A stretch of 64,000 bases of DNA from Setoptus koraiensis (GCA_048013815.1 CM106586.1:17112001-17176000); one strand, 5' to 3'. Numbered from the stretch's first letter, positions 17,794-20,525 are shown. The notes: generated by a model from the letters alone, not told the origin. Numbers and translations: made by a program.

Positions 17794-18111
17794 TCAAACG
17801 CAATTTTGTGATGGTGCTTGCATGACGGCTGGTAATTCGGGGGGCTCACTGTACGGGGTTACTTCTAACACACTATCTTCCCGCAGCATGAGTCCTATAG
17901 TGGCGGGTGACTGGGCCCTGGCTTGACTAAAATAATTTGTCATGGGGTGACTGTCAGCCATGACTTGGTGTTCATATATCAGTTTTTGTTCCTCTGGTGG
18001 CCTCTTGGTGATGCCGGCTATGACCATTTTGACATCCAAAACTGTGGCAGTATCCTTGACATCTATAAACATAGTTGTCTTCTGACGTCTCACCATGAGG
18101 AATAAATCCAT
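17794..18111 (-). CDS. ELOB: Elongin B (ubiquitin-like subunit of the Elongin BC / Cullin-2/5 ligases), 105 aa, intronless
   Basis: MDLFLMVRRQKTTMFIDVKDTATVLDVK...KRPPEEQKL...ARAQSPATIGL...TPYSEPPELPAVM matches the Elongin B signature (MDVFLMIRRHKTTIF...ARPQAPATVGL...PPELPDVM). Confidence 0.93.
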   Translation of the reverse strand: MDLFLMVRRQKTTMFIDVKDTATVLDVKMVIAGITKRPPEEQKLIYEHQVMADSHPMTNYFSQARAQSPATIGLMLREDSVLEVTPYSEPPELPAVMQAPSQNCV

Positions 18112-18835
18112 TGTTATTTAATTCAAGATATAATAATCTAGATGATATAATAATCTTCTAACCACAATTTTATTGTTTGTTTTATCTGATGGTAATGATG
18201 AAATTTTAGCTATTGCATAACACACCGATTGAAATTGCAGAATTTATATGTGTGTTCGAAATGCTAAAATAAAATGTGCGCTATTTATGAAAATCCCCAG
18301 CCCACTGTCACTCATGGAGCGAACAGTAGGGTGGGCGCAGTGCGCACATGAAACAGAGTTGGCTTTTCGCACCGAGTTCGCACTTGTTTTCTCTTGCTAG
18401 TTGAAATAGATGCGAACTGTTGTGCCGCTAGAGGCGCTGTAAACTCGAGCGCCACAAGCACAAGTGCGGTCAAAAAGCGCTCTCTAACGGCCTATCCCTC
18501 AACCAGCGCACACAGGGTGCGAAGCGAGCAAAAGCGAACAAAAGAGAACGAAAATTGAACACATGCGACGTCCAGCCGAATGCCTCTCGCACTCGCCAGC
18601 CGTTATCGATAGAGCACAACAAAATAGGAAAATCTCAAGTGCCGATGGCTCCATCTCGACTACACGGTATCAACTTGATTTGAACCCACAAGGTCCCAAA
18701 GGAGGGACGGGATGGAAATCCGATTCCTTCATTTCTCTCAGGGAGCTCAAATTCTCGAAACTAACGATTTTTCAGCCGGTGACAACCTTGAAAAATGCTA
18801 AAAGGCAACCAGCACGATAGAGACAATATCATATC
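18112..18835 (-). promoter_or_regulatory. ELOB upstream region/5'UTR, a diverged copy of the PSMA7 upstream region; includes a perfect DRE TATCGATA at 18604-18611
   Basis: Colinear blocks shared with 20108-20525, including tcttctaaccacaatt, tgatgaaattt, aaatgtgc-ctattt-tgaaaatc, catgga-cgaacag and gccgatggc-ccatctcgactacacggt. Confidence 0.8.
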
Positions 18836-18899
18836 TTGCACTGAGTAAATTTATCTGATACATTTTCGTAATATTATATGTATATATAAGTAGCATAAA

Positions 18900-20107
18900 T
18901 CACCTCTTTCTCTGTTCCATATCTTCCTCCTTCTCTTTTTCAATTTCGGCAACAATTTTCTCAATCTCGGTCGTGCTTAACAATTTCATTGGTGTCTTGT
19001 AAGTCATGATGGCAACCTCGAGGTTCTTGCCTTGGACCACCTCTAAAAGAGCTCTAATTGCTAATTTGATCACCTGGTCATCTTTAGCAGCTATTTCGGC
19101 GCTGTAATTCTTCTCTAGAAACTCCCTCACTGTTTGTGCACTGCGGCCGGTGGAATTTGCTTTCCATTCGTGATATACACCTGCACGGCATAAATGATGA
19201 TATGAATGGGCAAGATGATAGAGATTGCATAATTAATGAATTGATCGTTTTGGCGTCAAGAGGTTCGATCCGTAGATATTGGATCTACTTGAACTCAATC
19301 AGAATCTACATATAATCAGATGTTTCACACCAACGGTGGAACTCATAACAGGTCTGTAATAATATCATCATATCAGTTCTTAGCCAATATATGGCTCGCA
19401 CTTAGTGCTGACCAACAATGTATGGGGCTGAAAATTACCTGATGGATCGGTTTGGAAGAGTCGGGGAGTACCATCATCATCGAAGCCCGTGATAAGAGCT
19501 GAAATACCAAAGGGTCTTTTACCATTTGACTGGGTGTATTTTTGCTTCAATTGAGCAATGAATCTGGTGATGTATTCCAAGCTAACAGCGTCCTCCACCG
19601 TAAGCTTATGAGATTGACATTCTATCTTGGCCCGGTCAATCAATATACGGGCATCCGCCGTGAGGCCTGAATATTTCACACACAGATATAAGAGTGGATA
19701 GAGGATTATGTTAGACAACGGAGGCTACTTGTCAGCAATGGAAACCAGGGATATTCGTGATTAACTCACCGGCGAATGCCATAAAAACATGATTATCTAT
19801 AAGGCATATCTTGCGCATAGTTCTGTCTTCTTGGAGCTTTGCAACTGACTTTTTCTCCACGGCCAATACCACCACATTGTCACCCCTAACACCGACCTGA
19901 AATGATTTTGTACGTATGGATAGACGTATAAAAAAATTAGGAAATGGTGGTTGACTGTCTGATTATGTATTCAAATGATAAAATCCAACAAACTATACTT
20001 ACTGCTGTTGATCCCTTCTTCACTGCCTCCTGGGCGTACTCCACCTGAAATAGATGCCCATCTGGAGAGAATACTGTGATAGCTCTGTCGTATCTGGACG
20101 AACCCAT
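18900..20107 (-). CDS. PSMA7: 20S proteasome subunit alpha type-7 (alpha4), 246 aa; exons 20107-20003, 19896-19770, 19666-19439, 19180-18900
   Basis: [35 protein letters not shown]|VGVRG...FAG|[25 protein letters not shown]...[17 protein letters not shown]...LFQTDPSG|[12 protein letters not shown]. All three introns are GT-AG with matching phases. Confidence 0.96.
19291..19379 (-). ncRNA. SNORD25: Intronic box C/D snoRNA, U25 (SNORD25)/snR56-type, predicted to guide 2'-O-methylation of the 18S G equivalent to human Gm1490
   Basis: On the minus strand: box C ATGATGA (19371-19365), guide ATTACAGACCTGTT (19360-19347) complementary to the conserved 18S AACAGGUCUGUGAU, D' ATGA (19346-19343), box D CTGA (19319-19316, or 19302-19299), and a terminal GAACT/AGTTC stem. 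It is on the same strand as the PSMA7 host intron. Confidence 0.82.
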
Positions 20108-20525
20108 TTTTATTCAGTACAAGATATTGTAATCAAGCTTATATAATATAATAGTCTTCTAACCACAATTCTAGTGTTTCTATCTGATGAAATTTCAGCG
20201 ATTACATGCCACCAACGTAAATCGCAGAATATGTGTCTGTTTGCGTGCGTGTGCGAAAAGCTAAAAATCAAATGTGCACTATTTTTGAAAATCTCCAGCT
20301 CTCTTTGAGCCATGGAACGAACAGCCGAACGCGCTTGCACTCCCCAGCCACTCGTTTCGACTGAACACACTATCCGGAAACTGAAGCGCCGATGGCGCCA
20401 TCTCGACTACACGGTCGCTATCAACCTGGCCCGAACAGCCGCACCGTTCTCTCAGGCCCACTTGCACCGCCCACTGCGTCACCCCCTATTTGACTATCGA
20501 TGGTCTATAAGATAGCGACACAATT
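20108..20525 (-). promoter_or_regulatory. PSMA7 upstream region/5'UTR with a near-perfect DRE (TATCGATG 20495-20502) and an AGATGGCGC (YY1/CTCF-like) motif near 20395
   Basis: Lies immediately upstream of the PSMA7 ATG; motifs read directly from the sequence. Confidence 0.6.

Follow-up and report, generated by a model that had tools for sequence, protein, structure and literature searches.

How does a gene come to stand behind a second copy of its neighbor's promoter? The question is raised by a 64-kb stretch of the genome of the mite Setoptus koraiensis (GCA_048013815.1 CM106586.1:17112001-17176000), referred to here as the window, in which the genes for Elongin B (ELOB) and proteasome subunit alpha type-7 (PSMA7) lie in tandem on the minus strand. 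Along the direction of transcription, a gene of 1313 aa is followed by the PSMA7 upstream region, PSMA7, the ELOB upstream region, and ELOB, and beyond the 3' end of ELOB lies a convergent gene of 852 aa whose homologue is annotated from the eriophyoid Fragariocoptes setiger. All sampled 31-mers of 17650-20900 are present in a sequencing run from another study, and the sequence of this interval is thus reproducible. We consider it probable, with some reserve, that in an eriophyoid (gall-mite) lineage the 5' region of ELOB was swapped for a duplicate of some 330 bp lying directly before the PSMA7 start codon, and that this duplicate now serves as the ELOB promoter. The features on which the argument turns are as follows.

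17794..18111, minus strand: Elongin B (ELOB) coding sequence, one exon, 105 aa, stop codon included in the coordinates (open reading frame, Pfam, Elongin-B structures)
18112..18326, minus strand: proximal part of the copy of the PSMA7 5' region, immediately before the ELOB ATG and putatively holding the 5' UTR and core promoter, 70% identical to 20108-20324
18327..18554, plus strand: 228-bp retroposon-like insertion, in the ELOB copy only, with flanks like target-site duplications and an A-rich tail
18555..18685, minus strand: distal part of the copied PSMA7 5' region, with a near-palindromic motif, 73% identical to 20305-20428
18686..18846, no strand: spacer containing the distal boundary of the copy, with no significant match in the PSMA7 upstream region or the relative's contig L010
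18847..18899, minus strand: 3' flank of PSMA7, comprising a TA-rich tract and AGATAAA, a conserved poly(A)-signal motif at 18850-18856 (minus strand)
18900..20107, minus strand: PSMA7 (proteasome alpha type-7) gene, four coding exons (frame reading, tblastn)
20107-20000, 19893-19768, 19664-19437 and 19178-18903, minus strand: PSMA7 exons, with the stop codon at 18900-18902
20108..20438, minus strand: source copy, the presumed native PSMA7 promoter and 5' UTR region, orthologous to L010

The ELOB reading frame encodes an N-terminal ubiquitin-like domain (Pfam PF00240, ubiquitin family, E 2.3e-10, residues 8-60), and its residues 1-99 align with residues 1-105 of the Elongin-B chain in solved structures (E about 1e-25), a full-length alignment. 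The C-terminal PPELP tail was found, with PYSEPPELPAVM present in the window's ELOB; the final six residues and a four-residue deletion are lineage-specific, and an exact-protein look-up with the window's ELOB returned no match. In our reading the gene is Elongin B (ELOB/TCEB2) and not ubiquitin alone. The identity of PSMA7 was searched exon by exon; the best PDB match of exon 3 is to proteasome alpha type-7/8 (E 6e-38), as against only 1e-13 for alpha type-3. By best alpha-subunit similarity we assign the gene as proteasome subunit alpha type-7 (alpha-4), and the same four-exon structure is seen in the PSMA7 gene of contig L010.

The ELOB upstream region had been predicted, from the sequence, to be a head-to-tail duplicate of the PSMA7 upstream region with its breakpoint at the ATG. 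Alignment bears this out. Two blocks are colinear and in direct (plus/plus) orientation, 18114-18326 with 20110-20324 (161/229 columns, 70%, BLAST E 1e-30) and 18555-18677 with 20305-20428 (96/131, 73%, BLAST E 4e-15). Over its two parts (18112-18326 and 18555-18685), the ELOB upstream sequence is 70% identical to that of PSMA7 (20108-20438), and the Smith-Waterman score between the two regions is 81, compared with 12.4±1.4 and a maximum of 18 over 300 dinucleotide shuffles. The similarity reaches both start codons and a few bases past them (18105-18111 and 20101-20107, ATGGATT vs ATGGGTT) and then ends, the two coding sequences being unrelated. The join falls within about 4 bases of the ATG, and ATGG is present in both genes. 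At the distal end the significant similarity is shorter than originally supposed: a fading match to about 18835/20525 had been described, and beyond 18685/20438 the score of 12.5 is not significant against shuffles of 11.2±1.6. Copies of the segment unlinked to genes would have spoken against a duplication tied to these two genes; BLAST found none in the 64-kb window besides the two described, and no promoter-type repeat of this kind occurs in about 110 kb of relatives' loci.

The position of the copy, between the PSMA7 poly(A) motif and ELOB, also fits the proposal of a tandem duplicate of the PSMA7 unit. The copy begins just past the PSMA7 poly(A) signal, and both marks of a tandem segmental duplication are seen, namely direct orientation and placement next to the end of the source unit. 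The TA-rich 3' flanks of the two genes share a further similarity of 26 nt at 81%, which is of low complexity.

The interval that separates the two blocks in the ELOB copy is a 228-bp insertion (18327-18554) and not decay. It is absent from the PSMA7 copy and from L010, and PSMA7 bases 20305-20324 align to both of its flanks (18308-18326 and 18555-18575), which resemble a target-site duplication of 14-21 bp. On the plus strand, an A-rich tail stands immediately before the second flank copy. Both signs of non-LTR retroposition, a target-site duplication and an A-rich 3' tail, are thus found at 18327-18554, and a retroposon-like element would have entered the ELOB copy after the copying. No other copy of the insert was found in the window or in the fetched loci of relatives, and an Rfam scan of the region gave no match for it.

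Contigs of related mites were reached from their ELOB homologues, and eight relatives had usable context; one sample supplied the separate contigs L001, L010 and L012, which are assumed to represent one species. ELOB adjoins PSMA7 and is single-exon in all eight. The pair is head-to-head in five species (L003/L004, L006/L007, L008, L009 and L011), with 415-600 bp between the two ATGs and with an acetyltransferase/Tudor side and a BTAF1 side as flanks. Start sites less than 1 kb apart in this arrangement are found in L003, L004, L006-L009 and L011, and not in the window. A further relative, L002, has the same flanks with ELOB alone flipped. In L005 (82% identical) the genes are tail-to-tail, about 170 bp apart. 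In the L001/L010 species (87% identical), the conserved PSMA7 poly(A)-signal motif comes after ELOB on L001, and L010 carries a homologue of the 1313-aa gene and then PSMA7, as in the window; because the 3' side of ELOB on L001 holds the PSMA7 motif and the order on L010 matches that of the window, we infer a tail-to-tail pair in this species as well. The window's own PSMA7 poly(A) motif aligns with AATAAA-bearing sequence of L001 and L005, located there 3' of ELOB and beside the PSMA7 stop. A tandem ELOB-PSMA7 pair was seen only in the window. The adjacency of the two genes appears to be ancient, and their relative orientation to have changed several times.

Further traces of these rearrangements can be read in the flanking sequence. 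A GGCGC...GCATGC module lies 192-202 bp from the PSMA7 ATG in L003/L004, L006/L007, L008 and the flipped L002. Only a variant of it occurs in L009, the scan did not take in L011, and the module is absent from the window. None of the ancestral flank genes (Ras, Tudor, acetyltransferase, BTAF1, peptidase C97 and FBPase) lies in the window. The ELOB cassette is bounded on either side by a break in synteny with the close relative: the left one lies at about 17699, where the synteny of L012 on the side of the 852-aa gene stops beside the ELOB 3' end, and the right one in the PSMA7 3' flank. Tracts that are TA-rich and partly self-complementary (inverted pairs I5 and I12) flank the cassette and may have helped ELOB to flip repeatedly.

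Comparison with the closest relatives gives the direction of copying. Within the window's PSMA7 upstream sequence, 20205-20438 has its ortholog at L010 5082-5318 (73% identity over 242 columns, E 5e-35), and the Smith-Waterman score of the PSMA7 upstream regions of the two species is 96 against shuffles of 12.8±1.6 (z 54). A score of 43 (z 18) also links the window's ELOB upstream region to that of L010 PSMA7, with the distal part of the copy (18555..18685) matching L010 5084-5194. By contrast, the 1330 bp upstream of ELOB on L001 match none of the three, with z of -0.5, 0.9 and 0.5 against the upstream regions of L010 PSMA7, window ELOB and window PSMA7; an apparent 45-bp extension and apparent MAFFT matches were not significant and were dismissed. 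This mismatch is meaningful rather than an effect of saturation, because a neutral proxy can still be aligned between the species (PSMA7 introns 68-73% identical, third codon positions 73%). Since the window's PSMA7 copy is orthologous to L010 and the relative's ELOB upstream region matches neither copy, PSMA7 can be taken as the source and its copy as ancestral, in agreement with the direction that had been supposed. The original prediction had also named a finding that would tell against it, that ELOB was ancestrally adjacent to PSMA7 with this upstream sequence already in place. The adjacency does prove ancestral, but this upstream sequence stands before ELOB in none of the relatives recovered. 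We conclude that the ELOB 5' region was most likely replaced in the window's own lineage, the copy being absent from the closest relatives.

The copying event is probably about as old as the split between the two species and falls just after it. The divergence between the copies (70% identity) is close to the neutral divergence between the window species and the L010 species. Three-way site counts over well-aligned blocks are star-like: 33 sites unite the window's two copies against L010, 31 unite the PSMA7 copy with L010 against the ELOB copy, and 21 unite the ELOB copy with L010 against the PSMA7 copy. The proximal 100 bp are common only to the two window copies and not to L010 (33 sites vs 4 and 7). 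It is on this combination of near-neutral divergence, star-like counts and a window-only proximal segment that the dating rests. In the ELOB tree, the window, L001 and L005 form a 100/100 clade with a trichotomy within it.

As to the path, the simplest one that fits all of the geometry would be a duplication followed by a deletion, and we propose it with lower confidence than the outcome itself. The PSMA7 unit (promoter, gene and 3' end) would have been tandemly duplicated beside a downstream ELOB, and a microhomology-mediated deletion, acting through the shared ATGG, would then have run from the ATG of the duplicate to that of ELOB. Such a sequence of events would leave the proximal end of the copy on the ELOB ATG and its distal end no more than about 160 bp from the PSMA7 poly(A) signal. 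Two points count against it. It cannot start from the tail-to-tail arrangement of both closest relatives and needs a hypothetical tandem intermediate, and a random deletion that joins exactly at an ATG is a priori unlikely. A serious rival is therefore a single complex replicative rearrangement that sets out from the tail-to-tail state, by FoSTeS/MMBIR template switching or by inversion between the TA-rich tracts, and that flips ELOB and copies the PSMA7 5' region through the ATGG at once; it would have the same outcome and differ in path alone. We give it a sizable minority chance. Both closest relatives are tail-to-tail, the partly self-complementary tracts I5 and I12 stand on both sides of the cassette and coincide with the synteny breaks, and ELOB alone has flipped in L002 too, but the promoter copies are direct, where a simple inversion or fold-back should have left them inverted, at least two template switches are required, and junction scars are unreadable at 70% identity. 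An older duplication, preceding the split from L001/L010 and L005, seems rather unlikely. Under it, the tandem arrangement and the copy would be ancestral in the subclade, and the relatives would have lost the copy when ELOB inverted and gained another promoter. It would accommodate the star-like counts, the match between copy divergence and between-species neutral divergence, and an ELOB tree without resolution inside the subclade, but it requires that the tail-to-tail spacer of L005 and L001, roughly 170 bp long, should have lost every sign of the copy, and the restriction of the proximal 100 bp to the window copies stands against it.

The same comparisons bear on the history first proposed for this locus, in which a processed ELOB, retroposed from elsewhere, took the place of the coding sequence in a tandem duplicate of PSMA7. 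ELOB is indeed intronless, and the copy does start beside the PSMA7 3' end as a tandem duplicate would. Yet each of the eight relatives with usable context has a single-exon ELOB that already borders PSMA7, so that arrival by retroposition is unlikely; an intronless copy of an intron-bearing parent, by which a processed retrocopy is known, was not found, since every relative recovered has ELOB in a single exon. The sequenced genome of the eriophyoid Aculops lycopersici has a median intergenic distance of 538 bp and lacks introns in about 84% of its genes (PMC7738191), and because intronless genes are the norm in eriophyoids an intronless ELOB is unremarkable. The window holds no second ELOB and no PSMA7 relic, and an exact ATG-to-stop landing next to an old neighbor would be a double coincidence. 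We regard the processed origin as highly improbable. That a mobile or dispersed repeat landed before both genes, or that copying ran the other way, from ELOB to PSMA7, is scarcely credible. The similarity itself speaks for it and nothing more, against which stand the copy number, just two in 64 kb and zero across about 110 kb from relatives' loci, the single-copy and orthologous state of the PSMA7 copy in L010, the lack of the segment at a relative's ELOB, and the termination of each copy exactly at an ATG. Several other geometries were rejected. Inversion with staggered-break duplication of a bidirectional promoter, and movement of ELOB together with its old promoter, both predict inverted copies where direct ones are observed; tandem duplication of the ELOB-PSMA7 unit predicts the wrong gene order; insertion of PSMA7 with a long target duplication requires two exact ATG coincidences; and splicing of a read-through transcript as the origin of the ATG join finds no AG acceptor before either ATG.

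If ELOB has indeed taken over a duplicate of the PSMA7 5' region, the copied stretch would comprise the PSMA7 promoter and the whole 5' UTR. Acting now as the ELOB promoter, it would have both genes read a similar control sequence, and it would stand in for the bidirectional region that the pair shares in more distant mites. Coupling of the two genes is not obligatory, because in L002 ELOB has flipped away from the PSMA7 promoter; in the window, the copy would restore it. It may be hypothesized, as the original prediction did, that this shared regulation has been selected. The two copies contain perfect runs of 18 nt (18651-18668 = 20398-20415, in the distal part) and 16 nt (18154-18169 = 20155-20170, in the proximal part), for which P is about 0.02 against a 70% background, a hint that some elements were possibly kept in both. 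Constraint on the ELOB copy is only hinted at, because the copies, 70% identical overall, do not exceed the neutral proxy in identity.

A broader, and rather doubtful, extension is that eriophyoids may recurrently rewire their genes by fusing a neighbor's 5' cassette at or near the start codon of an intronless gene. The cassette may consist of the promoter, the 5' UTR and sometimes a first exon and intron, and the process may favor joins at an ATG or a splice acceptor, for example through microhomology in the start-codon context or through cDNA recombination, reverse-transcriptase-mediated intron loss being known from this lineage. Under such a process, co-regulation of PSMA7 and ELOB, lost with the break-up of their ancestral bidirectional promoter, would have been restored in this way. 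The window's 64 kb hold two such cases, the second being the MVK 5' region described below.

Our case can be set beside several known kinds of promoter change. Retrogenes may acquire promoters from their surroundings, an intronless gene being expressed from the borrowed promoter of a neighbor. Here, in contrast, ELOB is not a retrocopy by any test applied, and the promoter would have been physically duplicated rather than shared. Tandem duplications in Drosophila yakuba lead to regulatory shuffling and the formation of chimeric genes (Rogers et al. 2017, PMC5460883), and there, as in the window, a local duplication puts the 5' regulatory part of one gene before a neighboring gene. Unlike those duplications, the window's chimera takes only the putative promoter and 5' UTR from one gene and, from the ATG on, the entire coding sequence of another; it is an old rearrangement, apparently fixed rather than a population variant; and the recipient is an ancient neighbor whose earlier promoter arrangement can be reconstructed. 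Conserved head-to-head gene pairs with bidirectional promoters have also been described (Li et al. 2006, PMC1487180), and the divergent PSMA7-ELOB pairs of the five outgroup mites resemble them, whereas in the tandem pair of the window any coupling would come from two copies of one unidirectional promoter. As a kind of event, regulatory shuffling through local duplication is already known, and the window offers an unusually legible and lineage-specific form of it.

This legibility gives the locus its interest. The known cases of promoter shuffling by duplication are for the most part young variants within populations, or else are deduced solely from expression data. Within one mite superfamily, by comparison, a single ubiquitin-proteasome pair can be traced through four architectures, namely head-to-head, flipped, tail-to-tail, and tandem with a duplicated promoter. 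With the source and the derived promoter copy both readable, the locus offers a natural experiment on whether neighbors that lose a shared promoter regain their coupling by duplication. It also cautions that, in intron-poor genomes, an intronless gene with a foreign 5' region should not be taken as a sign of retroposition.

Elsewhere in the window, a second 5' region is present in two copies. The sequence at 1421-2023, which lies before an open reading frame of 584 aa, is an inverted copy, at 79-85% identity, of the 5' region of the mevalonate kinase gene (MVK) at 11363-10151, and it includes MVK exon 1 and intron 1.

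Relative to its counterparts in the two closest relatives (L001 and L005), the Elongin B gene ELOB in the window (17794-18111, minus strand) sits on a long terminal branch, 0.16 versus 0-0.04. It carries a four-residue deletion ahead of the PYSEPPELP motif, and its C-terminal tail is unlike theirs. The long branch, the deletion, and the altered tail may reflect quicker evolution following the promoter swap. The ELOB promoter copy has itself been interrupted by a 228-bp insertion (18327-18554) that bears an A-rich tail and a target duplication of 14-21 bp. This insertion has no Rfam match, and no further copies of it were found in the window or the fetched loci.

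The window holds a second copied 5' cassette, in which the 5' region of the mevalonate kinase gene MVK recurs in front of a 584-aa ORF (1965-3719). The copy takes in a coding piece resembling exon 1, a GTGAGT donor, and the intron, and extends about 10 nt beyond the acceptor. On the MVK side there are two additional segments, each of about 300 bp (10367-10690 and 10900-11190), missing from the copy. This duplication is given below with the repeats and palindromes from window self-comparison, among them a direct repeat flanking the same ORF.

Copied cassette, repeats, and palindromes in the window
1421-2023 versus 10151-11363, inverted: MVK 5'-region copy, 3 blocks at 79-85% identity
475-586 and 3983-4088: direct repeat of 112 bp, 73%, flanking the 584-aa ORF
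47962-48035: palindromic stretch of 74 bp
54285-54426: palindromic stretch of 142 bp

A further recurrence was seen in a related species. In L012, a contig from the same sample as L001, a 75-bp piece of the homologue of the 852-aa gene (the neighbor beyond the ELOB 3' end in the window) is repeated at 5479-5553, at the contig end and 2.4 kb 3' of that homologue, which suggests a partial tandem copy at that place. The intervening 2.4 kb have no counterpart in the window.

Among outgroup mites (L002, L003, L004, L006, L007, and L008), a conserved module, TTTRTAATTGGCGC-(spacer)-GCGCATGC, lies about 190-200 bp 5' of the ATG of the proteasome gene PSMA7, in the intergenic region it shares with ELOB. 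The module resembles E2F and NRF1/Ewg sites. It remains with PSMA7 in L002, in which ELOB is flipped, and it is absent from the window, L010, L001, and L005.

Within PSMA7 itself, exons 2 and 3 are split by an intron in the window (19665-19767) and in L010 (5875-5993), a contig of the close relative, and are contiguous in all outgroup contigs; the intron was either gained in the subclade or else lost in the outgroups. Intron 3 contains a box C/D snoRNA-like core (19286-19375, minus strand) with ATGATGA and CTGA boxes, whose conservation with L010 is far above that of the remainder of the intron. Its Rfam match to snR56 is weak (32 bits, E 0.08, under the gathering score). This core may be a reason that intron 3 persists in an intron-poor genome.
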